DNA of 63,290 nucleotides, filler included, from Guillardia theta CCMP2712 (GCF_000315625.1; 4 parts of 4 records of this genome joined end to end with filler, not necessarily neighbours in it), one strand, 5' to 3'; numbered from the whole stretch's first letter, positions 26,154-53,949 are shown. Translations and numbers: made by a program. The notes: a model not told the origin generated them from the sequence alone.

Positions 26154-26924
26154 GTCCTGAGAAATCTGCTTACTTCCCTCCCTCCCTCCCTCCNNNNNNN
26201 NNNNNNNNNNNNNNNNNNNNNNNNNNNNNNNNNNNNNTTAATTAATTAANNNNNNNNNNNNNNNNNNNNNNNNNNNNNNNNNNNNNNNNNNNNGGGAGGT
26301 GTGGGAGGTCTAGGAAGTTCCAGTGATTACCAGATGAGGGTCTACAGTCACGGCAGGGAACAAACCGCAGCCAACGCGGGAAAATCATGCGGGAAGGGGG
26401 AGGTAGAGAGGGAGCAGGGAAGAGATGCTCTGCTTCAGATGCTTTAGCTAGGACACCAGGGAGCTACTCTGAGCATGAAGGTAGTTTACAAGNNNNNNNN
26501 NNNNNNNNNNNNNNNNNNNNNNNNNNNNNNNNNNNNNNNNNNNNNNNNNNNNNNNNNNNNNNNNNNNNNNNNNNNNNNNNNNNNNNNNNNNNNNNNNNNN
26601 NNNNNNNNNNNNNNNNNNNNNNNNNNNNNNNNNNNNNNNNNNNNNNNNNNNNNNNNNNNNNNNNNNNNNNNNNNNNNNNNNNNNNNNNNNNNNNNNNNNN
26701 NNNNNNNNNNNNNNNNNNNNNNNNNNNNNNNNNNNNNNNNNNNNNNNNNNNNNNNNNNNNNNNNNNNNNNNNNNNNNNNNNNNNNNNNNNNNNNNNNNNN
26801 NNNNNNNNNNNNNNNNNNNNAACCGGATCAGCCGAAATGAGTGTCACGAAACGACGGAAATCTTCGAACTGAAAGCCGATCAGAACCAATCACGAACATG
26901 CTCACTTGACAAGTTCAAAGATGG

Positions 26925-27505
26925 AATACGAGTCTTATTAGTTACAAGTATCAACGTAACNNNNNNNNNNNNNNNNNNNNNNNNNNNNNNNNNNNNNNNN
27001 NNNNNNNNNNNNNNNNNNNNNNNNNNNNNNNNNNNNNNNNNNNNNNNNNNNNNNNNNNNNCGTAACGAGTCTCATTAGTTACAAGTATCCAACGTAACGA
27101 GTCTTTTTAGTTACAAGTATCAACGTAACGAGTCTCATTAGTTACAAGTATCAACGTAACGAGTCTTATTAGTTACAAGTATCCAACGTAACGAGTCTTA
27201 TTAGTTACAAGTATCAACGTAACGAGTCTCATTAGTTACAAGTATCAACGTAACGAGTCTCATTAGTTACAAGTATCAACGTAACGAGTCTCATTAGTTA
27301 CAAGTATCAACGTAACGAGTCTCATTAGTTACAAGTATCCAACGTAACGAGTCTCATTAGTTACAAGTATCAACGTAACGAGTCTCATTAGTTACAAGTA
27401 TCAACATAACGAGTCTCATTAGTTACAAGTATCAACATAACGAGTCTCATTAGTTACAAGTATCAACATAACGAGTCTCATTAGTTACAAGTATCAACAT
27501 AACGA
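26925..27505. repeat. 31-bp tandem repeat (CAACGTAACGAGTCTCATTAGTTACAAGTAT), interrupted by a gap
   Basis: About 14 visible copies after the gap; no spacers. Confidence 0.95.
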
Positions 27506-29724
27506 CTGCATCATCGCTTTGCACTGTCACTCAGTGACTATCAACATCACCGATGGCATCAAGTCCCTGAACCGCCTTCTCGTAACCTACCATTGTGCTA
27601 CCGCCGGCTATTTCTGGCCAACCCGGCGGACCTAACTTCAAAGTTCTCAGGCTGCGGCATGTCCTGAATGGTGCCCCCGAGACTCCGATTAGTGTCGCTG
27701 CCCGGGGCCCGGCCGCCGGGCCGGGCCCCGCCCGAACTCAGTTTTTACACGGTTGCTTGCCGGCACCGACCGAAAAACTACTAGGCTAGTGACCGGCCGG
27801 GCCGCGCGCTCCGAGCGAGGCTCACTGGCCCGGGGCTCGGCCTGGCGACCGTCGGCCAAGGCAAGCTCAGTTTGCCCGTCCCCGGGATAGCGTTATGGAC
27901 CGGCAGCCTGAGCCTCGGAGTCCGGCGTGCCAGGCCCCCGGGGGCCGGCCCCGGCTGAGGGACAACTTGGCAAAGTTGGCAAAGCGGCGGCTCCCGCTCG
28001 TCGGACTCTGAATGGAGTCACCGGGGTCGTGCTCAGTGTCAGGCCGCTGCCGCGCCGCGGCCATCGGACTCGGGATCGGATCATGGACTCCGGCGAGCCT
28101 CGGAGGCGAGTCCGACCGTACACTGACAGAGAGACTCGCCTCAGACCGTGCGGACGGACGGGGGGCCGGACCCGCCGCCGTCCAACTGAGCATCGGCCTG
28201 ACCGTCACCCCGGTTCAGCGGGTGCGGCACCGTCCGGGGCCCGGTTCACCGTTTGCCGCTCAGTCACTGCCGCCGCCCGGCACTGAGCTCTCCGGTGACT
28301 CTCGATGGCTCCACTCAATTCTAAAATTACTCAAAGTTAAGTGAAATCAGTATCAACAAGCTAGCTGAATCGAATAAGGAAAAAAAAACCGGAGCTCACT
28401 GGAGACATGTGCATTTTAAAATGATTGTGGTACTATACAACATTTTAAAACTGAGCTACCTAACTGGTAACTTGTAGATGAAAATTATTAAGTACAATTT
28501 GTGGTACTACCGGGTGCTCTATTCTCGTACTTCTAAAACTTTTTGAGTTCAAAACTCTTATTGTCAGGTAAAAAGGCATTTTTAATCTTTTAAAAACAAT
28601 ATAGAGGACAGAGATGGTGATGACTTGACTCACTTCGAGTGAGGGAACAACCCCCCACCGGTCATGGGCTGATATGGCATCAAAGGGGGTGGGGTACCTC
28701 ATTTGTTGTTTCGCTTTCCCCAATTTTTTGTCCCACTTTACCCCACGACCACCCCCCCTTGAGCCAAAACTTCTTGAGCTGATCCACGGGTAGTCAAGGT
28801 CGTGTGGGAGGTAGGGTGGTATCCAGGAGCAGCAATCCAAAAAAAAGTTTGAGAAAGGTTTTCCACCCCACCCCCAGAGATTTCCACATAGAGTACCCCT
28901 CCATAAGAGGTACACGCGATAAAATTCTAAAATAGTTGTAAAGAAGATAAGTTTAAAATTGATGATTTCAGTTGTGGGTCAGGTTTGCGTCCAAGTAGGG
29001 GTGGTCTGCGAAGGAGAGTACCACGGGTAGTCCAATGATCTTCTTGTGAACTTGGAATTGTAAGGGTGGGTAGGGTGGTGTACTGGAGGATATTGTTGGG
29101 TTGATACGACAGAGGGGGTAGGGGTAATAATAATATTATATATCATTATATTATTAGATTTAGGAGGAACGCCGAAGGGGTGGTGGGGGAATACAGAGCG
29201 TGTCGTTTATGTTGAAGGGTGGGGTATATCTCGGTTTGTAGAGGGGGTAGGGGTAGAGGGCGGTGTGCTGTAGTGGGGGTGGATGTAAGAATTAAGAAGC
29301 CAGGCAGGGGTTGTGTGAAAATGGAGAGAGAGGCGAAGGGATGTGAAGCAATGGAGGCAGTGAGGGAGTAGAGGAGAAGACAAGAGGACCAGGATGACGA
29401 GGAACGATGTTGACCAATGCGAGGAAGTCGAAGAGGTATCGAAGAGGTTTGATATGGCGGGAGGGGAGAGGAGGGCATGGGGGAGGGCTGGAACAGAATT
29501 GGACCAAGAATGTATCAAGAATGTATTCAGGGGGAAAGTCTTTTATACATAGCAATGAAACAATGCAAAACTGAAAGATCGATCCAGAGGGATGAAAGGG
29601 AATGAGAAGTAGTGTGAGGTGGGGAGATCTACAGCGAAAGGAGATTATGATTGGTGACTGATGCTCATCAAACTCAGGTGGGCGACAGCGGCGCCGGATG
29701 CAAGTTTCTTGTTGGGCAGCAAGG

Positions 29725-31701
29725 ATGGACGAAGAGAGTTGGTTCAGATCGCGAGCGCAAGCTCTTGAGCAACAGAACGTTCATGATGCGAGCATACTTT
29801 CAACCCACCCCACGGCTTCACATGTGCTGATGAGCAATGATTTTTACAGTGGAGGACATCCTTCTTTCATGGCCAGAGTCGACGCTCAGGATTCGATGCC
29901 TGAATTGAGCAATGCTTGTTCGCATTCTTTCCAGGGTTTGCATCAAGTTGATGATACGTCAGTTGTTTTCTTTCAAGAGACTGGTGGAAATTTGCAACCC
30001 TGTCAAAGCGTTGCTGAACCATCTTATGCCCCGGCCTCGTTACATGTGATAAATTATGCGTCAGGCTACCTGGATCAAGGGCAGGGGACAGTAAGCCAGG
30101 CGTCAGGCTACCTGGATCAAGGGCAGGGGACAGTAAGCCAGGGGTCAGGCTACCTGGATCAAGGGCAGGGGACAGTAAGCCAGGGGTCAGGCTACCTGGA
30201 TCAGAGGACTGGAAACATTACTACTCCGCAGGTAGGTGTGTCGTCGCATCCATCATGGTCCAGCAATGAAGGGTACTCGGATCAGGGACTCGGGTCCTCT
30301 GTCTCTGGACTTTCGCCGGGATCTTTTGCCAGTGATGGCTGTCCATCCCCTGAATGGAGTGAGGATGCGAGTGAGCTGTCTGCCGTTGCGTCAGACTCGA
30401 CGTTAAATCTACAACAACGGTCACATCAAGGCGATCCATGGTGTGACATCGGTGCTCATGATTACCAATTTCAGCTCGCAGGCTCTGCGATCTCTCGAGG
30501 AGAACAAATAGATTTCCAGGATGGTGGACAAGATTTTCCCACCTTTCTTTCTCCTGCGCAAAATCCGTTTCCAATCATTGATCGTTCAGACAAAATGCTT
30601 TCCAGAGCATGTTCTTTCTGCAAGAAACGGAAATTGAAATGCAGCCAGGTTCGACCCTGCGGAAATTGTTCAATGCGAGGACGATCTGCAACGTGTGATG
30701 CGACTGTAGTCCTTCCTAACTCAGCTCCATCGTGTGCAGTTGTGCAGCGGCCGCTGTACCATTCGCGCAGTATCAGCTTTCGGGACAGCGACGCTTTCAC
30801 GCGGGTGCTGATGGCCGCAAAGAGCGTGGGCATCAACCCGATGATTCTTCGAAGAATTTGGGAGGTCGGTCTGAACCCAGACAACTTCATGAGTATAATT
30901 CTCAACATGCCACCCGTGATGAAGGCAGCCTTCAATGAGGGCTGCGAGGTGCTGAGCAAGAGGTACATTCTGCATTTACAGAAGATGCGAGGTCAAATCG
31001 CCGCCCCGCATCCTCGTTCAATGCAACAGCAGCACCTCTTCTCGCTCGTCTTCGATGATGCTGAGGCGGAGATTGCTCACGTGAGCAGAATGTTGGGGCA
31101 CGAGCGCTTCTTGTGCTTTACCTTCAACCCGGAGAGTGGGGAGCGAATAAGATGCTCGCTTGGAGCTGACTATGCTGAAATCTTCGGGTTGCATACTGAG
31201 GAGTTCATGGCAAGGCTAGCGTCAAATGACCTTCCGATCCCTTCGACTGAGATCGACATGTTCTGTATCGTTGTATATTACTTCTGCAATGGTCTTAACG
31301 AAACATGTGATTTCTATGTACGACTGGACAATTACGGCAGCTCCAAGCAACATGTTCCCAGTATCTACAGGCATACGGTTGTGAAGGAGGATGACTGCTG
31401 GGGAAGGAACATTCGAACCATCTACTCGTTCGAGCCAGTAACTCCGGAGAAGTTCGACGTGATGGTCAAGTATCAACCCGAGAGAGTGCGGCCTTTCTCA
31501 AAGCTTCTTGGTGATGAGCGAACGTACGAGCAGCTGCTGCAATCGCATAAGAGCGACATGCAGTTCCGAGGAAAAATCGCCTACTGGAGGAAGTCGGGAG
31601 TTCAGCGGAAGAAGCTGGAGGTATTGGGACAGCACATGATGGCTTGTTTCAAGGAGGCTGCAGGAAAGCTGAGCGAGGTGCTGGAGAGTGTTGGAGGGTA
31701 A
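29725..31701 (+). CDS. Zn(II)2Cys6 binuclear-cluster transcription factor with 14-aa tandem repeats
   Basis: RACSFCKKRKLKCSQVRPCGNCSMRGRSATC; 42-nt repeat (SGYLDQGQGTVSQG) at 30061-30205; start could be 29698. Confidence 0.85.
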   Translation: MDEESWFRSRAQALEQQNVHDASILSTHPTASHVLMSNDFYSGGHPSFMARVDAQDSMPELSNACSHSFQGLHQVDDTSVVFFQETGGNLQPCQSVAEPSYAPASLHVINYASGYLDQGQGTVSQASGYLDQGQGTVSQGSGYLDQGQGTVSQGSGYLDQRTGNITTPQVGVSSHPSWSSNEGYSDQGLGSSVSGLSPGSFASDGCPSPEWSEDASELSAVASDSTLNLQQRSHQGDPWCDIGAHDYQFQLAGSAISRGEQIDFQDGGQDFPTFLSPAQNPFPIIDRSDKMLSRACSFCKKRKLKCSQVRPCGNCSMRGRSATCDATVVLPNSAPSCAVVQRPLYHSRSISFRDSDAFTRVLMAAKSVGINPMILRRIWEVGLNPDNFMSIILNMPPVMKAAFNEGCEVLSKRYILHLQKMRGQIAAPHPRSMQQQHLFSLVFDDAEAEIAHVSRMLGHERFLCFTFNPESGERIRCSLGADYAEIFGLHTEEFMARLASNDLPIPSTEIDMFCIVVYYFCNGLNETCDFYVRLDNYGSSKQHVPSIYRHTVVKEDDCWGRNIRTIYSFEPVTPEKFDVMVKYQPERVRPFSKLLGDERTYEQLLQSHKSDMQFRGKIAYWRKSGVQRKKLEVLGQHMMACFKEAAGKLSEVLESVGG

Positions 31702-31899: not shown

Positions 31900-32946
31900 T
31901 CACTTCTTTCCGGTCTGGTTCGCCACGCCTTCGATCGCATTTCTGACCATCTCCGGGTCACCGAGGTAGCGGCCGGAAAGAGGAGCGTAAGCGCCTTCAG
32001 CCCTCACGGGCTTGAGGTTCTTGTCGAGCTTGTAGACAAGGGGGATGGCGGTGGGGATGTTGAGAGAGCAGATCTCCTCGTCGCTCAGACCGTCGAGGTA
32101 CTTGACAAGAGCTCGGAGGGAGTTCCCGTGAGCTGCCACAAGGACCTTCCTGCCACTCTTGATCGCTGGAGCACAAACTTCCTTCCACCACGGCAGGACT
32201 CGAGCAACAGTGTCCTTGAGACACTCAGTGCTTGGAAGGTCCTTCAGGCTTTTGTGCTGTGGCTGATTACCCGCCCAGTATGGGCTGTCAGGCGACATGG
32301 GAGGAGGAGGGGTGTCGTAGGAGCGTCTCCAGAGGTTCACCTGCTCACTGCCATGCTTCTCCACAGTTTCTTTCTTGTTCAATCCCTGGAGAGCTCCATA
32401 GTGGCGCTCGTTGAGTCGCCAGTCCTTGTCCACAGGGATCCAAAGGAGGCCGAGGTCTTCCAATATGAGCAAGCCAGTCTTGATGGCGCGTTGAAGAAGG
32501 GAGGTGAACATGACGTCGAAGCTAAATCCTTCGCTCTTAAGGCTGTTGCTTGCTCTCTTGGCCTCGTCGATTCCAGTCTCAGCGAGGGGAACATCCACCC
32601 ATCCTGTGAAGCGGTTCTCCTTGTTCCACTGAGACTCCCCATGTCGAACGAGCACCAGGGTGTAGTGGCCATTCTCATCAAGTCCATCTTCTGCCGACTT
32701 GCCTCCCATCATTTCCTTCAAACGCTCGAGCATGCCTCCTCGCAGTCGCAGCGGAGCGCGCACTTCATCGGCTACGCCTGCTCGGGAAGTAAGGAAAGCT
32801 GATGAAGGAAGGGGAGCTGACGCTCTCAAGGAGGAAAGCTGAGACGAGAGCGACAGAGGGGACGAGGACGAGGGCGAGCACGAAGGGTTCGAGGCCGCCA
32901 TCGCCGCCATCGCCGCCGCCATCGTCGCAGTGAGCCAAGAAGCCAT
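31900..32946 (-). CDS. gpmA: 2,3-BPG-dependent phosphoglycerate mutase with N-terminal targeting extension ending in LRLRGG
   Basis: [62 protein letters not shown]. Confidence 0.95.
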
Positions 32947-33792
32947 CGCGGAAGTAAGCGCAGGTCGTAACGGGAAGGACACAAGGAAGGGTGGTATGAT
33001 TGATAGGGGTAGGGGTCATCTAGGGTAACTGAAAAAATGATGGGTAGGGTAGTCTAAACTCCATGCAGACCCATAAAAAATCCTAATCAATATACTCAAA
33101 ATGAGGGGTCATGTCTCAGGTTTGAAGCAAATACTAGGGTAGGGGTACTCATACAGTTGAAAGGGCAACACCATGTTGATGTTCCTCGGGTGGGGTACTA
33201 AGAGGGGGTGATTATTAGGTCGAAAATGGGGGTACTCAGGCTCAAATAATTGGGGTTGGAGGGGTGGGGGGTATCACCACCCCTTTGCAGATGCGAACCG
33301 GTACCCATTCCAACAGATTGCAGGGCTACAGTACCCGTCGGTGCAACCCTTGAAAGTTTGGAAGTTTTGTATGCGGAATGTTTCAAACAAACTTTTTGAA
33401 GAGTGACACTCTTCAAAACTTGAAACTTTCAACGTACAGTCAAACGCCGTGGCAATCATGCGGCGGCCGCGCGGCCTGAGCCTACGGTTGGCACCGTACG
33501 GTTCGAAGGCTCTCGCCGAGGATCGGAGGGCCCAGGCGGTCAACGACGTCACAACTCAGTGACTGTCAATTTACTGAGTTGGACCGAGGCGATGTTAAGG
33601 TACGTCACTCTCAGTGCCGGCGGCTTGGCCGCCGAAGTCAGAGCTTGGCCCTTCACTTCAACGCCGTCGTCACAGACGCAGTGACTGAGTCGACTGAGAG
33701 CCTGGTGTAGGACTCTCACTGTCAATGAGCTTGCGAACTGCTGGATGCATCACGGCGACACAGGCCGGGCGGATAAACTGAAACGGTTCGAG

Positions 33793-41630: not shown

Positions 41631-41667
41631 AGGGTTTAGGGTCTTGACTAAGAGTCTAATAAACTCA

Positions 41668-41707
<40 letters not shown>

Positions 41708-41728
41708 GGGTTTAGGGTTTAGGGTTAG
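41631..41728 (+). mobile_element. Severely 5'-truncated retroelement stub (41643-41706) between TTTAGGG repeats
   Basis: AGGGTTTAGGGT|CTTGACTAAGAGTCTAATAAACTCA(AAT)n|AGGGTTTAGGGTTTAGGG; the same CTAATAAACTCA+(TAA)n end occurs at 44911-44945. Confidence 0.7.
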
Positions 41729-41783
41729 CCGGGCCCGGCCGCGGAGGCCGGGCGGCGGCACCGGCGGCTCAGACCGGAGGACT

Positions 41784-42475: not shown

Positions 42476-42546
42476 AGGGTTTAGGGTTTAGGGTTCAGGG
42501 TTTAGGGTTAGGGTTTAGGGTTAGGGTTTAGGGTTTAGGGTTTAGG
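42476..42546 (+). repeat. Interstitial telomeric tract (TTTAGGG with TTAGGG/TTCAGGG variants), followed by 21-bp x3 (CGCCGTTATTTTCGGCAGCAG)
   Basis: Direct. Confidence 0.95.
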
Positions 42547-42890
42547 CGCCGTTATTTTCGGCAGCAGCGCCGTTATTTTCGGCAGCAGCGCCGTTATTTC
42601 AGTTTTGGCAGCATGGCTCCTCGCCAGGTGTAGGGGAAGCCCATGCCGTTCACGGTTCACAAACCCATATGCAGCCCCTAGCAAATCTGGTCTTTTTTTT
42701 TTTTTTTTTTCTACTTTTTTTGGGGTTCACATGGGGTCCGTATACACACTCCCTGTTGACTACCCCCTGTTTTCACCGGCCGGATCAAAGGGGGGGGGGG
42801 GGGGGGGGTAGAGAGACTGGACATAAGCGGGGTGGGATGATTTGAATTCCTCTGGCGTGGAACCCTTCCCCCGCCTTGGACGGTTTTAGA

Positions 42891-42996
42891 GGTTTAGGGT
42901 TTAGGAGGCCGCCGGACTCAAAAACAGGCCGCCGGACTCAAAAACAGGCCGCCGAACTCAAAAACAGGCCGCCGGACTCAAAAGCAGGCCGCCGGA
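42891..42996 (+). repeat. Short telomeric tract followed by 20-bp x~4.5 (AGGCCGCCGGACTCAAAAAC)
   Basis: Direct. Confidence 0.9.
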
Positions 42997-43341
42997 CACT
43001 CCATCCAGCCCATGCCGTTCACAAGGCCATATGCAGGCTCTAGCAAAATTGGTCTTTTTTTTTCTCCTTGGGAAGGGGTTCATATATACACTTCCATTCA
43101 GCTACCCCGGTTTTTGCTCTCTTACTGGGGGGTAGTGAGACAGGGATAAAGTAGGGTGGGGTGATTTGAATTATACTGGCGTGGTACCCTGTCCCCCCGG
43201 CCTTACTTTTTGAAGCACTTCATTTTAATTGTTTAGTCAGCGCTTCAATCATACACATGTACGGATGAAGTGCCTCTGGTACAGTCTGTACTATTCTTTT
43301 AAAGTGGTTTCGACAGGCGTCTCGAATCAGCCTCCACCCTA

Positions 43342-44523
43342 GTGACTTCCTTTGTCTGGAGGGGTAGAGGACCGAAAGATTCTCTCATACCCGTGCATTT
43401 CACTGTATCACGGTACGTGGGGGTGCTAATGGAAAAGAAGGCATTTCGATTGCCGTTGGAGCTCACCACGCCAATACCGAAGGCATCAAGGATGCAGAAG
43501 AAGGCAGGCGGCAAGGACGGCAAGGAGATCAAGATCATCATCAAGTCGACGGCGGCATCTGGTCGCTTCACGAGGAAGGAGATGGAGGGGCTGTGCAACG
43601 GCGGCAACACGTCTATCGCAAGAGTCAAGAGAGTCTTGTTGGAGATCGCTAACAGGCTCGAGATCAACGTTGAAGGCATCGACATGGAGGAGGATTTGAA
43701 CACCAAGTCCTGGAACGGGTCCAAGCTATGCATCCTCCTCGGCTCCACGGAGGATGCTCGACGCATGATGAAGGAGCTGCCCTTCTATCTCGAAGGCGCA
43801 GCAACCAAGCTCGAAGCAGTCGGCTTCGACAAGGAGCCTGACTCTGAGGCGGCTGGTCAGCGGGGCACCAGCGACGCAGCGCAGCGACAGGAGGAGAGCG
43901 AGGGAGAGTGGCTGGAGTTTACAGACCTGGAGAGGATCACAATGGAGGCAGCATCTCCGTCAAGCCAAGAGGACATGCAGCTCGTCAGCGAGCTGTCAGC
44001 AGTCATCGAAGATGCAGCTTCTTTGAACGAGGCAGGGACGAGCGAGCCGATCAAGCTGGTCCTGGACAAGGCCGTTGGCAACCTCCACGACACCTTCTAC
44101 TCTCCGGGGAGCCTGGAGTTCATGTCGCTGGGAGAGTGGGCGAAGATGCCAGAGGAGCAGGGAGTTGGGCGCAACGCGCTCAAGGAGAAGCTGGGGAAGT
44201 GGCTGCAGAGCAAGCGCTGGACTCGCGTGCAAGGAGAGAGCAAGAAGGCAAGGAGGGGCAGCGCGTTCTCGCCACGGGCAACGGCAGCTGCTGAGCTTGA
44301 GCAGGAGGCGGAGAGCGACGACATAGAGCGTCGATCTCTTAGCCTCCTGTTCATAGCACTGAGTAAATTCGCAGAGATGCATGTGCTGGCCTGCTCGCTG
44401 AAGGTGGACAAGAAGGACCGACTGCGAGTGGAGATGAGGGAAGATGGCGAAGAAGAGGAAGACATGGAGGAAGAGCAAGGCGAGGGCGAGGAAGAAGACG
44501 GGGCGAGCCCGTACCGAGCTTGA
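43342..44523 (+). CDS. Open C-terminal half of the retroelement ORF1 homolog (first ATG 43429)
   Basis: SGRFTRKEMEGLC ~ SGKFSRNEIEKIC; WNGS..ARRMMKELP ~ WDGS..ARKMMAEFP; SPGSLEFMSLGEWA ~ SPGNASFPTLQEWA; KARRGSAF..LLFIAL ~ KARKNSAF..LLFIAL. Confidence 0.8.
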   Translation: MTSFVWRGRGPKDSLIPVHFTVSRYVGVLMEKKAFRLPLELTTPIPKASRMQKKAGGKDGKEIKIIIKSTAASGRFTRKEMEGLCNGGNTSIARVKRVLLEIANRLEINVEGIDMEEDLNTKSWNGSKLCILLGSTEDARRMMKELPFYLEGAATKLEAVGFDKEPDSEAAGQRGTSDAAQRQEESEGEWLEFTDLERITMEAASPSSQEDMQLVSELSAVIEDAASLNEAGTSEPIKLVLDKAVGNLHDTFYSPGSLEFMSLGEWAKMPEEQGVGRNALKEKLGKWLQSKRWTRVQGESKKARRGSAFSPRATAAAELEQEAESDDIERRSLSLLFIALSKFAEMHVLACSLKVDKKDRLRVEMREDGEEEEDMEEEQGEGEEEDGASPYRA

Positions 44524-44544
44524 GCTGAGCCCAAGGTAAGGAGA

Positions 44545-44762
44545 GAAGGTAGGAGGCGACCGAAGGCCAAGGTGAGGAGAGGCAACTCTCCTGACTGAAG
44601 CTGAGGAAGCTGAATGGAGGACGAGTAGGTGGCGACCGAAGGCCAAGGTGAGGAGAGGCAACTCTCCTGACTGAGGCTGAGGAAGCTGAATGGAGGTAGA
44701 GTAGGTGGTGACCGAAGGCCAAGGTGAGGAGAGGCAACTCTCCTGACTGAGGCTGAGGAAGC
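44545..44762 (+). repeat. 76-bp tandem repeat x~2.8 in the 3' UTR, each copy with an AGGAGAG-GCAA-CTCTCCT hairpin
   Basis: Period 76 (44555, 44631, 44707). Confidence 0.85.
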
Positions 44763-44945
44763 CAAGAGAAGACAGCAGAAGTAGAGAGTAGAAAGACGCC
44801 TCAGAAGCAGGGTTCGCATTGTAGGCCGTGTACTCCCAGTGCTCGAGCGCCTCATTAGACTAGGATCAAATTGCAAAAGCCCACAACGAGGCCGAGCAAC
44901 ATTCTAGCATTCTAATAAACTCACATAATAATAATAATAATAAAT

Positions 44946-44987
44946 AGGGTTTAGGGTTTAGGGTTTAGGGTTTAGGGTTTAGGGTTT
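44946..44987 (+). repeat. (AGGGTTT)6 telomeric tract between two retroelements
   Basis: Direct. Confidence 0.97.
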
Positions 44988-45188
44988 AGAGGATCCCTTT
45001 ATCTGAGGCATGCAGAGGATCCCTTTATCTGAGGCATGCAGAGGATCCCTTTATCTGAGGCATGCAGAGGATCCCTTTATCTGAGGCATGCAGAGGATCC
45101 CTTTATCTGAGGCATGCAGATCAGCGGGGTCCCTGCGTGGTAGAGCAAGAGTCGCCAGGAACGCAGGAAGCTCGGGAAACCATCGAGA

Positions 45189-47306
45189 ATGCTTCGAAAC
45201 ATGTGGCCAATATCTATTGTGAACCCTGACGAGATCGTGCAGTACCGTACCTCCAGCTACCTCAAGAGGCAGACGGAAGCTGCCACGATGCCGTCATCAG
45301 CCGAACTGATGCGGAGACTGGATGAATTCGCAAGGCAGAACCCCAAAAGCAGGACGAGCAAAGCTCTGAAAGCCAAAGAAATATCCTTGGAAGCCTTAGC
45401 CGAAGCCATCAGTCAGACATGCAGCTTTGCTGAACCCTCGTCACTGGAGAGTGGGGTGACGATGTCAGGCAGTGGTACCTGTCAGAGTTCCAAGCTGACA
45501 GACAAAGGCAGATGGAGGCCAGATCATATGAGGCCAGATCATATGATGACCAGGGCACAAGTGTGCAGACGATTACCATGAAGGTACTTTTCCAGACAGG
45601 TGGAAAACTTATGCCTCAAGCTTGAAGAGCAAGGCTTGATCGTCGATCAGACGCAAGACAGCAGGAGCCTGATCTTCAAGGCTCCCTTGAAGCCTGACCT
45701 TGTGCAGGCAGCGGAGATCCCAGCAGTGATCACATTTGTCCGCAATGAGGCGGCTGAGAAACTCTGGAAAGGAGAAGGTACCTTCAAGGTGGCAGGCAGG
45801 AGGATCCTAGCAGTGAACCCAGCAGCCAACCCACCGATCTCGTTCAAGATGCGGCCAAAGAAGGAGAACATGGGCAGAGTTGGAATCCTAGCTGAGGTGG
45901 CCCAACTCCTGATGCTCAACGATTCGAGCACAGGTGACATATGTGAGATCTACAGGCAACTATGCCTGAAGCAGGGATTAGCGATCATTGATCTGATCCC
46001 AAACGCGGGAATGACAGTGAACCTCCCCCCCAAGAGGAACCTACCGCCAAAGAAGGTGTTCGCTGCGGTAGGAATAGAAACAGTCAACCAGAACAGAGAG
46101 GTCGACTGGATCGCAACGTGCTCGAGCCTTGAAGCAGCGGACATCGTTCTTCAAGCATTTGATCGACATGGAAAGGATCGTGCAGGAGTCACTTTGGGAC
46201 TGGTCTCAGAGAATGACAAAATACTGAAATGGTTCTCAGTGCAGATGGAAGCAACGGCGCTGCACAAGAATATGAAGAATGCGGTGCGACAAGAGGGCAC
46301 GGCAATGGCAACGGGAGCAGAGATGCTGTACTCGGTACAAATCTCCTCTCCTGTGCCGTCAGGGAAGTTCTCCCGAAATGAGATTGAAAAAATCTGCGCA
46401 AGTGATGAAACGGGCAGAGCAAAAGTCATCCGAAACATTCGGAGGGCTGTCGCTTGCTTTGATCCACAGGTGGAAAAAGATCTCCAACGGATCCACCTCC
46501 AATGCGATCCAGAAACAGGGATCTGGGATGGGTCTGGTATCATTCTCCGGCTACGCAGTGAAAGTAGTGCAAGAAAGATGATGGCTGAATTCCCCACACA
46601 GCTCCTCTGCTGGCAAGGCACAGTTGAAATCCAAACGACAGCGAGCAGTCTGAACCTCCAAGTGTCGCCTCAGGCAACTCGCGATCAGTCTAACCCTGAG
46701 GCCAGGTCACAAACGACGGGGACCAGAGCAGAAGGAACTGTGTGGAAAGAGATCGAGCTCAGTTCCATTATCAATGAAATAAACCTCCCAGATGCGGGAA
46801 CGGACGTGGTCGTCGTAGAACTTAAGGAAGCAATTGCTGACGTAACTAGGAGCGAGCTGCAACAGCAAGGGCAGCTTCAACTCCATCTTGATGACGCGGT
46901 GCAAGAGATGGCTCCGGAGAGCCCAGGAAATGCATCCTTCCCCACGCTACAAGAGTGGGCTGATAAGGGGGCCAACGCGGCAGAGAATGCCGTGAGCAAG
47001 CGACTGCGTGAACGAGTCAGGGTGATTGCAGGCAAACATACGTGGAAGGTAGCGAAACGCAAGGCTCGGAAGAACAGCGCTTTCGCACCAAATGAAGAGA
47101 AGCCATTGAAAACTGATCTCCTCTTCATTGCTTTGACGGCGCTCTCCCTCGTAGGAATGCTGGGAGATAGAAACGAATTGAAATTTGTTTTGAGCAGTGA
47201 GCTACAGATGAAAGACGCTCGAATGGAAGATGTACCCGAGGCTGGGAGCATGGCGGCAGAATCGGAAGAGATGTCGCTTGACTCCTTCCCAGCAGCGCAA
47301 GCCTAA
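45189..47306 (+). CDS. Retroelement ORF1 (~705 codons, one in-frame TGA at 45579-45581); no CCHC knuckle seen
   Basis: ORFs 45189-45581 and 45600-47306 are in the same frame; both parts match the upstream paralog. Confidence 0.8.
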
Positions 47307-48150
47307 TGGAAGCAGGAGGAGGAGGAGGAGTTGAGGGCAGGTGGGACAGTGGGCACCAGGGCGTGGTGGAATCAAGCAGAAAGAGACAAGAAGGTGAGAA
47401 AAACAATGACAAGAAAAAAACAGAAAAAAACAGAAAAATACAAACATTCGACTTGATAGGGGAGATCCCCTGGAGTCTACGGGAAAACAATAGAGAGTAC
47501 GGAGCAGCGGCGCTGCTCAACTCAGGAGAAGATGGATTTCTCTCTGAGGACGTTATGGAGGCATTAATCGTTGAGGTAAACCGAAATTTAGAACCAGCGG
47601 AAGACAGATTTCAAATAGCATGGCTCCAAGGCACGAGGTATGCCAGCGAGCAAACTAGAAACCAATTTGGGCTGCAGAGAGGGACCATTGTTCTCCCGAG
47701 AATAGTAGCGGGTTTGAGAGATCAGGAGGGAAGGGCACGGAGAGCAAAACGACTGCTAGCCGGGGCAGCTCAACCATTCTTATTCCCTTGCGTAGAGAAC
47801 GGCAATCATTGGATCCTAATCGTGGCAGATGTTAACACAAAAAGCATACACATCGTCGACTCGCTTAGCACGGCCCTTGAGAGAGACCTGGGGACAGTCA
47901 GAAGCCAAAGGGAGGCACAGTTTCAATTGGGGGGCGCACAGCGAATGGACCTAGCATCACTCATGGCGACGATTATCACCGAGGCAATTAGCGATCAACA
48001 AGAACACTGTGACGACACGGCATGGAGGGCATGTGTGTCAACTGGGCTGCAACAAACAGACGGCTACAATTGTGGAATTTTCGTTTTGCTGCATCTGCTG
48101 CTGATCGCAAAGACACGAAGGAAAACACATCAACACAGGGAGGCAACAAG
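47306..48150 (+). CDS. ORF2 N-terminal Ulp1-like (peptidase C48, SUMO/Ubl) cysteine protease
   Basis: FLFPCVENGNHWILIVAD..IHIVDSL..QQTDGYNCGIFVL: His-Asp-Cys triad plus oxyanion Gln. Confidence 0.88.
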
Positions 48151-51100
48151 GCGTCCCCCCCCATCAGCAATGGCTCATGCGAACAAGACCGTGGCATCGG
48201 ACATCTGCTGCTGGATGGGCTCTGGGGGGGGAGTATGGAACATGTGCACATGCGAGAAACAACCCAATGCATCTGCAGAGCTCTACAGCACGCGCAAGAT
48301 ACAGGTTACAAGGAATGGCAAGCTGCAGAGCTCACCATGGAACGTATACCTAACCGGATGGAAAGGCGAGAAGACGGCCAAGAACGCGCAGGCGATCTAC
48401 AGGCGACCCAGGCATCTGAAGATGCACGGCTACAGGAGAGATTGGAAGACGAGCAGGAGCAAGGAGGACAAGGATCAACGAAGCTCATAGCCGCGACGGT
48501 CCTGCAACTACAAGACAGGTCAGCACAGGTAGACATCCTGACGTCCTCCCCTCCCCCACCTCCTGCTTCATGCCCCGTCTCTCCACTCCAGCCACCTCCT
48601 CCGCCACAAGCAATGCACACAGCGCCAATCTCGAAGAATGACAAGGAGACAAGGGGAGAGGAGGAGCTACCAGGCCCAACAAAGATGCAAGATGGGAACT
48701 CGTCTCACCTTCAATGGGCAACGGAGGCGGAGGAGCAAATCCTACCAGCAGGCAGCAAACCACCCACGACTACCACCGACAGGTCAGTGCAATCAACATG
48801 GGTGGAAACGCACAGGAAGGACAACGCCCCTGGCAACATCATTTCTCACAATGTCAATGGATGCAGTCAATTTGTGCTGAAACACATCCTAGGATACCTG
48901 ATTGAAACATATCAACCAACAGTCGTGCTACTTCAAGAAGTTTTGGTCGGGGGAAAACGAAAGGAGGCAGATCTCCGAATGATGATCAAGAAAGAATGGG
49001 GATGCTACCGAGTGTTCATGACGAAAGGTGCAGGGGAGGGGAGAAAGGGTAAGAGTGATCTTCGCCTTGTGACGCTAGTACATGCGGACCTTCTCCCTCG
49101 TCCCTCCCCCCTGCTCTGCCGCCGCGCTGACATGTTGGAAGAGCAGAATCTCCAAAAAAGAATACAACTTTTACAGATCGGAAAAAAAGAACCGATAGGG
49201 ATCTGTAACACCCACTTTCCTACTGCAGCGCAAGGGGAGGATCAAGACGAGATGTGGGCAACGCTGAGCCAGATGCTCAAGACGGAGCCAAGTGTCAAGC
49301 TCACCATCATAGGAGGCGACTTCAATGCATCTCGACAACATCCAGAGATCCCCATGAGAGTCGGATACGGGAGCAAATCGAGTGTGCACCGTGCAGATGA
49401 GAGAATGGAACAAGGCTTAAACGAACTTGGACGATCCCAGATGGTCACTTGCGAGAAGATGAGCAGAAGCAGCACGCACTTCACCTTCTCCACATGGTAC
49501 AAGCAGGGTCATCACCAAGCAAAACTGGATCATGTCTTTGCATTACACCATCCATCTTGCACAGTAAGCTTAATATCGCAGACCGCAGAGGATTGCATCA
49601 TAGGAGCCGCAGTCGACCACAGAGCACTTGTAGTGAATGTGAGCTCGCTCGATGCTGAGGGTGAGCAAGCCATCCCAAAGATTGAAATCCTCCCGCAAAG
49701 GAGGGATCGAGAAGCAACCCCTCGACGAAAGAAAAGGGTGGTCGAGATGGACAAGCTATCGGGAAGACTAGGCGTGGAATGGGCAATAGCACTTGATGAG
49801 AAGATAAAAGCGGCACAAGCTCTACATCAAGATTGCGACATTCTCGAATTGATAACAACAGCCCTCCCCATCAAGGAAATTCCGCTACGAGGCTCCAGCG
49901 GGAAAAGACATGCATCCAAAATTCAGATGGATCTGAAACGCAAAATCAAGCAACTTCACAAGGACTTAAGAAACGCTTCAGAAATTCCAGACTTTATTGA
50001 TCGCGCACACAAGGAGTCGAGCTTACATGCAAAAATAAGAGAGAATATGACCAAATTCAAGGAGATCTGCGCAGCACAAGACCAAGAGATATTCCTGAAA
50101 ACATGCGAAGAACAAAGAAGACGCTTGGGCACGATAGGGAGTAAAGAGTCTCAAAATGCAATGGGCAAGAAGTCAGACTTTAAGCCCAAAGCCCCAATGC
50201 TGAGTCAACTGCCAGAGAAGTGCCACCCAAACACAATCGAACTTACGTCATGGAGAGATCTCCAGCCAGCGCTGCAACAGCCGGAGACAGCATATCTTCA
50301 AGAACTGAACCCGTTAATCGAGACATTCCTCCAGAGCAACTCCAAAGAATCAAGCAAAACCTTTTGGAGTGCAAGACATCAAACCATGCTGCACGTCGAG
50401 GTTCTCGGGGCGAGGAACCAGGCAACACTGACACAAAAGCTGTTCATAACTCTGGCGCCTGCACACGCAATCGTACCCATCATCCGAGGACTGATCACAC
50501 AGCCAGGAGGGTGGCGCCTGGAAGGATACAAAAACATCGAGCAATTCCTCCCCATGAGATTGGCAAGAGATCTAGAAGATGAAACCCACACGGCAACCTT
50601 CTTTGCAGTCAACGGATGTACCATGAACGGAACCTGTGCAAGAGCTGAATGTCAAACAAAAGGACGACTGATTCCGTTATATGACAAAAGCCAGAAAAAC
50701 GAAGAAGCATCAATCCTCTTCTTCTGCAAAAGCTGTCAATCACTGACTTCCGTCAAACCACCGGACTTCGAACCCCCAGAGCAAATCAATCAACACCCGA
50801 CCAGGGATGTAGAGATAGCTTACCCGCTGGAGCCAGGCGAGATCCAAGTATGGATTCAAAAACTGGCCAACCGGAAAGCAGCAGGCATGGATTTGATTTC
50901 AAACGAGATTCTGAAAGCTCTGCCTGACAGTGCAAAGGAGGAAATAGGCAAGACAATCAGCCGAGCCTTGATCGGAGACAAGCAAACACTAAAGATGCTC
51001 GCGAGAGTTAGGCTCCTCCCAAAAAATGAGATATGTCACGTCTTGGAGAATCAAAGACCTATATGCGTCCTCTCCTCGATAACGAGGATCTTCCAGGCAG

Positions 51101-53949
51101 TCATAGCGCACAGACTGGCAAAAGCTGCTGAAAAACATAAGCTACTCACTAACAACCAGGAAGGTTTCAGACCAGAGGGAGGAACGATCAGGCAGGGTCA
51201 TCGTCTACTCAACATCATCGAGGAGGCTCAGAGTAATCAACACGACCTCATCCTGCTGTACCTCGACTTTGCAAACTTCTCTAACAATGTGGCAGTCGAA
51301 TCCATTGCAAAAATCATGGAAGTATATGGCTTTCACCAGTGTGATGTAGACGTCGCAATCAGTTGTAGCCAAGGGATAGCGCTGCAAATTCAGACAGAGA
51401 GGTTCGAAACAGCAGCCATCCCACTTCTCAGAGGATTACCCCAAGGCAGCCCCGCAAGTCCGCCAAAAACAAATCTTCTGCTCAGCATCTTGTCCAAACA
51501 ACTTGATCAACAACAAGACGAGATTGCAACTCAACACCCTAATAATCTGTCATTTGCAGACGACCTTGTCCTGATAGCACATTCAGTGAGAGAGATGAAA
51601 ACGCTTGTCCAAGTGGTAGAGCGATTCTGTCGATGGAGTGGATTAGAACTGAACACGAAGAAATCTGAAATCACCAGCTTTGATTATCGGCTAAGAAGGG
51701 AGATCCCAGGAACACAGACCATCAAGTTCTTCGACAAGGAGTTTGTGAACCTACCACCGACAAAATGGTTCAAATATCTAGGGATCCGGATCAGCTTGTG
51801 GAGACCAGGAGGAAGAGGCAACAAGGCGCACACCTGCCCCTTCACGTGGGGAGAGAAAGAACACATCTTGGAGAAGACAAAAGAACTGACCAAGCTGATT
51901 GAATCATCTGCTTACTCGGCAGCCCAAAAATATTACCTGGTGAAGGTAGGCATCGTCAATATATTTAGATACTCGGCGGTACTGGTGAGCTGGTCTTGGT
52001 CAGACTTACAAACCTTAGATACCCTCTGGACCAGAGCATTCAAAAGAGCTATGGGATTGAGCAAGAGTACAAGCAACGCTATCTTTCACCTACCTTGGGA
52101 CAAAGGAGGCCTCCAACTCCCCCATCCAGCACCCATCTTGGGAAGGGCGGCGATTCGGTATCTAGAGAAAGAAACGAATAAGAAATGCAGGGTGGATGAT
52201 GATATCAAAAGCAGTCTGATCCACAAACTAACATCATGGTGCAACCAATGGGGGTGTCAAACAATAAACCAGCTACAACGAGAAATCAGATCGGGCAGAC
52301 TCAAAGAGAACGAAGAGATAAGAGGACCGGAGAGACTCGCAATCTGGATAGCGGAAAAAATGCAGACCACCATCAGTTGGGAAATGATTGAAAGCAAGAT
52401 GAAACCGGGGACAATAGCCATCTTACATGACCTGGAGGACAAGATGCTCTCAGAAGAAAACTCCCTGCTGTCCGGAGAAAACTCCCTACCTACATCTCCT
52501 GCTCGGCAAGGCTGGGAGAGTTTTGCAAAGGCATGGAGACTACTGCCCCAAGTAGGCTTCCACTCCATGACAAGTGTCTTACCCGTCCCAGATACCGAGG
52601 GCATCTCCCTGCACCTGCCCATCCGACTCTGGCCATTCCCAAAGCAAAGGGAACAAGCAGAAGACATCCTTGCACAATATCTGCAAGCGAATGTCATCTG
52701 GGCAAAACTCGGACTTGAGCAGGCAGGAACAGGGAAGAGAAGAAGGCCAGCCAGGGAGGAGGGGAAGCCTCTAAACAAGAGAAGGAAAGGAAAAAGGGAG
52801 GCTAGCCCACATGAACTTCAGCCACACAAGAAACTAGCCAGACCGGACCAAGGGAGAGAGGAAACGAATACGAAGGCTTGTACCCGGGTAATTTTGAGGC
52901 GGTGGCTCCAACATGACCCCACCTGTTATGATGAAGGAGGGAATCAGCAAGAAAGATTCTGTTACACTACAAGCAACATACCTTTCAAAGTTCAAGGGAA
53001 CATAGCCATCTTTGAGCGATCTCAAATTGAAGAAAGCAAGACCGTGGATCCACCAATAGAATGGTTGGAAGCGTCACTGGACTCGGCTCCCTTCGCATCT
53101 GCAACAAGGGAAGAGGACGGTAATAACCGAAGAGACTGCAATCAAAGCATCCATCTGCTGCTGGAAATAGTTAATGCATTGGACGACGGCGAAACAGAAG
53201 CTACAGCATGGTGGCAACAACTCGAGGAGGTAGTATCAGAGGTTCGCCAAGAAACAACACAACCATTGGCATACGAGTTTTTACAACATCTAGCAGAGAT
53301 TACAGCATGCGACATCAGTACATTTCGTAACTGGCCTACCCTACACACACATCCCCAGGCTCTGGACAAGAAGAGAGCAAGGGAACTGCACAGAGTGGTG
53401 GTTTGGATGGACAAACAAAAGAGATTTCGTGAACAAATCCTGGATACAATACATGTCATTCTGATAGGATGGAAGAATAACATTGATGAGATACCAGAAG
53501 GTTTTGAAATTATCAGCCGGGTCCCGAAAGGCGCTCAAATAGCTTATGCAGCAAACTTCTGGCAATCAGGGAATAGGTGTTTGATGAAGACTGCAGAGGA
53601 GTTATGGATACTAGTTAGGCACACACTCCCAACATACTTACGAGTCCAGCTTCAGGACAACATCCTCCCAACGTATGAGGAGCTGTGTAACAGACGAAGG
53701 GATCAGATCCAGCCGTGCAGCGATCATCAAGGCGGAAGGCATTTCACAGCAGCTATTGAAGGAGACATCATGCAGGGCAGAAAAAACAGATCCATGCGAG
53801 TAGGATATGTTCTCCAACAAAAAGAGATGACGTCAGGAGGAGGGATGAAAATCAATGGGAAGTGCAGCATCATCCGAGCGAACACAATCGCAATCGGTTT
53901 ACTTCTGCAACATGTCCTTGAGGAAGGAATACAGATCAAAAGGGAAATC
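48022..53949 (+). CDS. ORF2 main part: APE endonuclease (~48835-49640), CX4C..CX2C motif (~50630-50740), reverse transcriptase (~50870-51800), long C-terminus with RNase H-like remnant (~53740-53949)
   Basis: APE: ISHNVNG, VVLLQEV, IIGGDFNA, KLDHVF, VDHRAL. RT: KAAGMD, RPICVLS, QEGFR, LYLDF, GLPQGSPASP, FADDLVL, GLELNTKKS, FKYLGI. Confidence 0.93.

Follow-up and report, generated by a model that had tools for sequence, protein, structure and literature searches.

What kind of retrotransposon joins a Ulp1-like protease to an APE-type endonuclease and a reverse transcriptase (RT), and how does it come to lie directly behind a tract of telomere repeats? Both questions are raised by a stretch of Guillardia theta CCMP2712 DNA of 63,290 nt, here called the window, of which the piece 26294-53949 was analysed on the + strand, up to an assembly gap after 53949. 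We consider it very probable that the region holds the 5′ nine kb of a non-long-terminal-repeat retrotransposon of about 10.7 kb, a cryptophyte form of the Dualen/RandI dual-endonuclease group. The same high confidence covers the domain layout, the reading of this copy as a mutated one and the telomere array.

Domain layout and family placement

A sequence-only reading of the window had proposed one ORF2 of more than 2200 codons, with an intact C48 protease triad upstream of an APE domain, a cysteine motif between APE and RT and a degenerate RNase H just before the gap, and each of these domains was found. The protease lies in an open reading frame (ORF) of 394 codons (47306-48490) that matches PF02902 (Peptidase_C48) with an E-value of 1.3e-7 and 32.2 bits, above the cut-off of 20.7. 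In alignment with yeast Ulp1 (1EUV), GNHW of the window pairs with QSHW, IVDSLS with YVDSLS and LQQTDGYNCG with PQQPNGYDCG, which sets the window His (47807-47809), Asp (47858-47860), Gln (48053-48055) and Cys (48071-48073) against His514, Asp531, Gln574 and Cys580; the triad and the oxyanion glutamine are thus all in place, and they are invariant across three copies. An ORF of 1976 codons (48022-53949), open into the gap, contains the RT (PF00078, RVT_1, E-value 1.3e-25) with its FADD box. The APE domain is recognized by a match to PF03372 (Exo_endo_phos; E-value 1.8e-4, 21.8 bits against a cut-off of 24.5 in the window, and E-value 9e-5 in the relative P0001) and by the motifs QNVNG, LLQEV, GGDFNAS, LDHVF and VDH, which are conserved in 12 relatives; a phmmer search of the PDB with the APE part gave no meaningful match. 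The cysteine motif consists of CARAEC (50635-50652) and FFCKSC (50719-50736), and a C-x2-4-C ... C-x2-C arrangement is present just 5′ of the RT in all 16 relatives examined.

The relatives were found by a word-based protein search with the window RT region. The two closest, P0001 (2573 aa, 92 % identity to the window RT region) and P0002 (2575 aa, 91 %), each carry PF02902 and PF00078 in one protein, and the closest named relative is a transcript of the cryptophyte Hanusia phi (P0003, 61 % identity). P0001 and P0002 are encoded by the metagenome contigs L001 (10,731 nt) and L002 (10,737 nt), in which an ORF1 of 712 and 713 aa, respectively, overlaps ORF2 by one base. The protease is therefore present in other copies, in frame with APE and RT, and the proposed single ORF2 is continuous in both siblings. 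It is not so in the window copy: tblastn with an intact sibling as query recovers ORF2 in three pieces, at 47306-48142, 48129-48188 and 48202-53943, no two of which share a frame. Compared with the window, the contigs of the sequencing runs X1, X2 and X13 have 14 nt more after 48129 and 13 nt fewer at 48187, and because the net difference is +1 nt the C48 part and the APE-RT part lie in one frame in these contigs. DNA alignment with L001 and L002 shows that the same 14 nt/13 nt pair of indels sets the window copy off from the siblings. ORF1 is also damaged, being open only in two parts (45189-45581 and 45600-47306); the segment 45449-45589 is in another frame, and there are a 17 nt deletion and a stop at 45579-45581. 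Since the ORF2 indel pair is private to the window copy, or to its assembly, and its ORF1 is damaged likewise, we take the window to hold a mutated copy of an element with a single intact ORF2.

We also weighed a programmed −1 frameshift that would join C48 to APE, and reject it, since none of the other copies has the two indels that make up the break. We note that ORF1 (at 45449-45589) and ORF2 (at 48129-48201) were each hit by a nearby pair of indels that shifts the frame only locally; such pairs may have arisen by real mutation or by gene conversion from a diverged copy, or may be artefacts of assembly or polishing. The position of the ORF2 break, exactly between the C48 and APE parts, could also be taken to mean that the protease was joined to a long interspersed nuclear element (LINE) only by chimeric assembly, or by a nested Ulp1-bearing insertion in the window copy. 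We give this practically no credence, and regard it as refuted, since two independent metagenome contigs and the contigs of three runs join both parts in one frame, and the C48 part is under purifying selection between the siblings.

In P0001 numbering the window copy breaks off at about residue 2190, and a loose end in the reads behind 53944 runs on as in the siblings. Past this point, where a CCHC knuckle and a restriction-like endonuclease (RLE) had been suggested as things to look for, both siblings have a CCHC knuckle followed by an RLE of the R2 type. The full order of ORF2 in the intact copies is C48-APE-C4-RT-long spacer-pseudoRNaseH-CCHC-RLE, and the catalytic motifs of C48, APE, RT and RLE are all intact in the siblings. 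The ratio of non-synonymous to synonymous substitution (dN/dS), computed between the two intact siblings, L001 and L002, is 0.08 for the RT, 0.09 for the pseudo-RNase H, 0.10 for CCHC plus RLE, 0.15 for C48, 0.20 for the post-RT region and 0.29 for APE, and rises to 0.76 in the linker after C48 (residues 301-480).

This order places the element with Dualen/RandI, the group in which an APE 5′ of the RT, an RNase H-like fold between RT and RLE, and CCHC plus RLE 3′ of the RT (seen here in the siblings) occur together; APE and RLE have been reported in one element only from Dualen/RandI (PMC9977147; PMC4640811). An RT tree of 48 sequences (IQ-TREE, LG+C20, rooted on two zinc-finger R2-like proteins) unites the window with P0001-P0003 at 100 %, makes this group sister to P0005, P0006 and P0013 (98 %) and nests it in a clade of 26 dual-endonuclease elements with 96 % support in the Shimodaira-Hasegawa-like approximate likelihood ratio test (SH-aLRT). 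The remaining clade members combine RT, RNase H, CCHC and RLE; those whose N-terminal part was scanned or aligned have APE as well. A cryptophyte element, Dualen-1_GCr, has been described with SET, C48 peptidase, APE, RT, RNase H, CCHC and RLE, a configuration called cryptophyte-Dualen-specific (Lescot et al. 2016, PMC5029228), and a 2025 paper reports that LINE/Dualen elements are expanded in cryptophyte genomes (PMC12747079). Of the two placements that had been offered from the sequence alone, a Dualen-like element or a new lineage, the first agrees with the finding of CCHC and RLE beside APE in the siblings and of an RT within the clade of matching layout, and the second is not sustained, as the RT falls in a group already described with the C48-APE-RT-RNase H-CCHC-RLE layout.

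A new LINE lineage outside Dualen that gained protease, APE and RLE independently might still be argued from the make-up of the tree, which holds no Repbase Dualen reference, from the low identity (only about 30 %) of the nearest relatives outside the family, and from the lack of SET and the separate ORF1 of the window family. We consider it very unlikely, given the nesting of the RT, with good support, among elements that carry RT, RNase H, CCHC and RLE, and APE where examined, the publication of the same C48-to-RLE set for cryptophyte Dualen, and the restriction of the APE and RLE combination to Dualen in the reports cited above. Because Lescot et al. already describe this set, the domain architecture of the Dualen element studied here is not new, and its layout adds one family, not a kind, to cryptophyte Dualen. 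Three features extend their account: the dead RNase H under selection, the UAAUG overlap of the two ORFs, and the fixed-register insertion into TTTAGGG repeats in arrays with an ORF1-only partner.

The nearest described systems are the cryptophyte Dualen elements (Dualen-1_GCr of Geminigera cryophila and Dualen-5_CCu; PMC5029228), which have in common with the window family the order C48, APE, RT, RNase H-type domain, CCHC and RLE, as well as a cryptophyte host. Dualen-1_GCr differs in carrying SET, which is absent from P0001 and from the L001 ORF1 (although present in the relatives P0004, P0007, L073 and L074), and in encoding one protein of 5287 aa rather than a separate 712-aa ORF1 and 2573-aa ORF2. 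Compared by description, the window family also departs from cryptophyte Dualen in that its RNase H catalytic residues are all replaced and in its insertion into telomere repeats, of which PMC5029228 makes no mention. The Dualen/RandI elements of Chlamydomonas reinhardtii share the dual endonucleases APE and RLE, the RT, the RNase H and, from later papers, a cysteine protease, and one of them, Dualen-4b_cRei, is active (PMC9977147); again by description, the type elements are dispersed and not reported to be telomere-specific, whereas the window family is telomere-inserted. NeSL-1 and Utopia-1_TSP of nematodes (PMC4640811) resemble the window element in an N-terminal Ulp1-like C48 domain, a C-terminal zinc knuckle with RLE, and targeted insertion into repeats. 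They have no APE or RNase H and belong to another RT clade, and the RLE as sole endonuclease with N-terminal zinc fingers, which characterizes NeSL/Utopia, is not the arrangement of the window element, which has an APE and an RT that groups elsewhere. The R2 protein (8gh6, 9nl2, 9nl3, 9dou) is alike in its C-terminal linker, CCHC and PD-(D/E)xK fold (Z 19-22 over about 228 residues), but it has neither APE, protease nor RNase H, and its target is 28S rDNA.

The RNase H-like domain and the N-terminal protease

The C-terminal part of P0001 (residues 2106-2573) was modelled with AF2 from an alignment of 18 sequences, with a mean confidence (pLDDT) of 75 and values above 90 over much of the C-terminal half. 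Searched against the PDB with Foldseek, the model has R2 retrotransposon proteins as its top matches (E-values 8e-10 to 2e-7); many RNase H1 structures come next (E-value about 5e-7, target TM 0.66). VIA-align superimposes model residues 214-468 on the linker, knuckle and RLE of R2 (9nl2, 9nl3, 8gh6) with Z 19-22 and a root-mean-square deviation of about 2.9 Å over about 228 residues, and residues 12-170 on RNase H1 with Z 13-14 over about 135 residues, so that an RNase H fold is predicted at the homologous position. In the siblings and 15 distant relatives a C-x2-C ... H ... C knuckle is followed by R-P-D, then after about 13 residues by E-(F/L)-(T/A)-R and K-x2-Y; R-P-D ... E ... K-x2-Y is the R2-type RLE signature, and CCHC with PD...E...K is conserved in 17 relatives.

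The RNase H-like domain itself is not detected by Pfam in P0001, and 15 relatives match PF00075 with the canonical ATDGS, R-x-E-L, TDS, H and NEAAD. At these places the window family has AIEGN, RANT, YQS, no histidine and QEAK, and Hanusia has GIHGE, RAYL, FQS and QDAQ, such that the D-E-D-H-D positions read E, N, Q, none and K in the former and H, Y, Q, none and Q in the latter. The suspicion that the catalytic residues were altered can accordingly be extended to every one of them. The domain is predicted from its residues to be catalytically dead, and it is under strong purifying selection (dN/dS 0.09), and since it is so constrained despite the loss of its catalytic residues the fold appears to be kept for a non-catalytic role. 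It could serve as a structural or nucleic-acid-binding spacer, in the way of the retroviral connection domain, to which a fossil RNase H under strong purifying selection would be a natural parallel.

For the protease we lean, at a little short of an even chance, towards an enzyme that acts in trans to remove SUMO or some other ubiquitin-like modifier from its conjugates, rather than an enzyme of self-processing. The argument is indirect and comes from relatives in which the same place is filled differently: SET is found at the N-terminal side in P0004, P0007 and L074, USP together with SET in L073, and some close relatives with the same multi-domain ORF2 carry no protease. Because relatives swap SET or USP plus SET into the protease position, a role on ubiquitin-like modifiers or chromatin seems the better fit; and because C48 and USP are two unrelated folds that share only ubiquitin or ubiquitin-like (Ub/Ubl) specificity and are both interchangeable with SET, a domain of the histone-methyltransferase type, the target would be the modification of chromatin or host factors. 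The C48 domain may thus act in trans as a SUMO or ubiquitin-like deconjugase on chromatin or silencing factors at the insertion target. The recurrence of C48, USP or SET at the N-terminal side of related lineages points to a repeated manipulation of ubiquitin-like modifiers and chromatin by retrotransposons.

A protease acting in cis would cut the ORF2 polyprotein of 2573 aa, or a product of ORF1 and ORF2 together, into separate enzymes, after the manner of retroviral and picornaviral proteases. Such a role would suit the great length of ORF2, its many domains and its linkers under weak constraint (as in residues 301-480), and an N-terminal protease whose triad is intact and under selection. 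However, in close relatives with the same multi-domain ORF2 the protease is missing altogether or is replaced by SET or USP plus SET, which means that processing is no requirement of the family, and no conserved Gly-Gly-type site was found, as LWGG follows C48 in P0001 and the window but not in P0002. We regard cis-processing as unlikely.

Two sequences at the N-terminal side of relatives may be described separately. In L073 an ORF that overlaps the ORF2 start (L073:3426-5132) encodes a USP/UCH deubiquitinase domain (PF00443, E-value 1.8e-9) and SET (E-value 1.7e-7), and L074:1-774 encodes SET at the position matching that in L073.

Proposed insertion into telomere repeats

The element stands in a subtelomeric array that extends from about 41.6 kb rightwards, head to tail, with host-like genes to its left. 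The repeat between the units, TTTAGGG, is the cryptomonad nuclear telomere repeat (PMC3622300), and the analysed piece contains 14 double-repeat matches, all on the + strand, against 0.01 expected by chance. The order of the array is a truncated 3′ end, repeats, a short fragment, repeats, an ORF1-only element, repeats and the full-length element. L001 assembles as a single tandem-array unit, and at least 17 perfect repeats close L002.

The ORF1-only element has a single ORF (43342-44523) with 28 % identity (E-value 6e-18) to the C-terminal half of the Dualen ORF1, which is itself without a known domain in Pfam and without a match in the protein atlas. It has its own 20-bp 5′ repeats and also precedes Dualen in L002, and from its sequence it is probably a non-autonomous, gag-only partner of the larger element.

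All the 3′ ends have the form TCTAATAAACTCA-(A/C)-ATAAT(AAT)n-A, followed by GGGTTTAGGG, and all the 5′ junctions come after ...TTTAGG, with TTTAG in one case, so that the six 3′ and five 5′ junctions of the window, L001, L002 and L036 all keep one register. The sense strand of the element is the G-rich strand and its 3′ ends point outward, which agrees with endonuclease-dependent, site-specific insertion in the manner of SART1 and not with end addition in the manner of HeT-A. Insertion without an endonuclease would mean either addition at a chromosome end that was later capped by telomerase, as in a HeT-A/TART-like system, or a TTTAGGG tract that is the element's own 3′ tail, copied in tandem duplication. 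Head-to-tail arrays with short repeat tracts between the units, the tandem unit of L001 and the repeat-terminated end of L002 are compatible with these schemes, and Drosophila HeT-A/TART do share head-to-tail terminal arrays, a gag-only partner and (for TART) spliced antisense transcripts with the present case. HeT-A and TART, which are of the Jockey clade and have no telomerase repeats between units, lie in the opposite orientation to the chromosome end from that seen here. Priming at the 3′ end of a chromosome would give the reverse orientation, not a G-rich sense strand with its 3′ end outward; two apparently intact endonucleases are under selection; and the 5′ junctions of three element types fall in one register. 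We therefore think it quite improbable that no endonuclease was involved.

Site-specific insertion by the Dualen element could proceed as follows. The ORF1 stop and ORF2 start overlap in a UAAUG; the same stop-start overlap is found in SART1, whose ORF2 is translated by termination-reinitiation, and ORF2 of the present element may be translated in that way too. The ribonucleoprotein would recognize telomeric repeats, and one endonuclease would nick the C-rich strand next to CCC/TAAA; the 3′ end so produced would serve as primer for reverse transcription, which would begin at the (AAU)n-A tail. A cut in the G-rich strand after TTTAGG, by the other endonuclease, would give a 2-bp duplication of GG.

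There is a functional parallel with SART1 and TRAS1 of Bombyx (PMC7265360), which likewise have a fixed telomere-repeat site, one orientation, and an ORF1 and ORF2. Those elements have only an APE, poly(A) tails and no protease, RNase H or RLE, and they belong to the R1 clade, in which the window RT does not fall, so that the likeness is one of function only. A limited literature search found no paper linking Dualen with telomere targeting, which is weak evidence of absence, and the contigs of sister lineages (L073-L075) show no telomere repeats, their ends being incomplete and hence uninformative. It is possible, and we propose it tentatively, that this is the first recognized telomere-repeat-specific Dualen lineage, distinguished by a SUMO-type protease and a fossil RNase H and building arrays at cryptophyte chromosome ends with its ORF1-only partner, and that its Ub/Ubl module permits insertion by acting on telomeric chromatin or SUMO silencing. 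If this is true, Dualen becomes one more telomere-specialized group of LINEs after TRAS and SART of the R1 clade, with two endonucleases for the two nicks, and the division of labour between APE and RLE becomes testable on a simple repeat substrate.

Several points weigh against the explanation set out above. CCHC and RLE are not visible in the window copy, which is cut at 53949, and are supplied by siblings that are 82-88 % identical to it in DNA. The Pfam score for APE is just short of the gathering cut-off, and the AF2 model of the C48 domain, made from a three-sequence alignment, has a pLDDT of 33. For lack of a Repbase Dualen reference in the RT tree, the assignment to Dualen is by layout and published description. 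The alignment given to AF2 for the C-terminal model included relatives with canonical RNase H, and by hhalign the pseudo-RNase H profile matches canonical relatives weakly (probability 20 %, E-value 0.0012, 54 columns), although in the same register. The specificity of insertion, finally, could have an exception. A scan of the metagenome with the 3′-end motif gave 70 loci, 67 of them chance AT-rich matches and three (L018, L036 and L056) related; in L056 the sequence beyond the (AAT)n tail of a partner-element 3′ end is non-telomeric.

Feature map and neighbouring sequence

The features of the array and of the window copy are collected in Table 1, from left to right.

Table 1. Positions of the retrotransposon features and telomere-array units in the window
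Feature	Position	Strand	Evidence or remark
5′-truncated copy, reduced to the 3′-terminal 70 nt or so of Dualen (3′ end at 41636-41708) with (AAT)13, then TTTAGGG	41636-41730	+	3′-end match
Short fragment similar to 5′ sequence of the ORF1-only element	42546-42905	–	Bounded by TTTAGGG tracts
ORF1-only 2-kb element	42906-44944	+	Same 3′-end motif and (AAT)n tail; TTTAGGG flanks
(TTTAGGG)6 telomere-repeat tract, insertion target	44945-44989	+	Directly 5′ of the element
Element 5′ end, 26-bp unit x5.1	44988-45120	+	Related repeat opens L001 and L002
ORF1	45189-47306	+	Homologue of the 712-aa L001 ORF1; no known domain; broken here
TAATG, ORF1 stop/ORF2 start overlap	47304-47308	+	Same one-base overlap in L001 and L002
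ORF2 N-terminus and C48/Ulp1 domain	47306-48129	+	PF02902, Ulp1 alignment
Frame-break segment	48130-48201	+	14-nt deletion and 13-nt insertion relative to siblings
Pro/Gln-rich linker, weak constraint	48202-48834	+	dN/dS 0.76
APE-type endonuclease, catalytic motifs conserved	48835-49629	+	PF03372, motif conservation
C-x4-C ... C-x2-C motif, probably zinc-binding	50635-50736	+	Conserved in relatives, just 5′ of RT
Reverse transcriptase	50875-52032	+	Pfam core 51019-51792; FADD box 51553-51564
Post-RT region, about 560 aa, conserved, no assigned domain	52033-53730	+	dN/dS 0.20
RNase H-like domain, predicted catalytically dead, first 73 residues	53731-53949	+	Ends at gap; siblings run on into CCHC and RLE

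Two further observations concern the element in the run contigs. One contig of run X2 tracks the element to 50574 and then passes into CCCTAAA repeats, that is, inverted telomere repeats, and looks like a rearranged or truncated copy. In contigs of X12 and X13, two runs that we guess to be RNA, at least 13 segments of 45-203 nt are skipped within 48769-53642. The skipped segments end in CT..AC on the + strand, equivalent to GT..AG on the minus strand with a good 5′ splice-site consensus, and look like the introns of spliced antisense transcripts. The antisense splice dinucleotides are kept in 6 of the 13 in L001 and 8 of the 13 in L002, about the level of chance at 85 % identity; as the splice sites are conserved no better than this, we make no claim of a selected antisense gene.

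To the left of the array, a phosphoglycerate-mutase-type protein is encoded on the minus strand at 31903-32982 (PF00300, E-value 1.7e-37), adjoining it; the protein begins with an Ala-, Ser- and Leu-rich extension of about 100 residues that may be a targeting leader. A second ORF, at 29698-31701 and also left of the array, encodes a Zn2Cys6 cluster, and a 31-bp unit is repeated 14 times with 97 % identity at 27061-27505, in an AT-rich stretch in which the G+C content is 25 % at 26294-27293.

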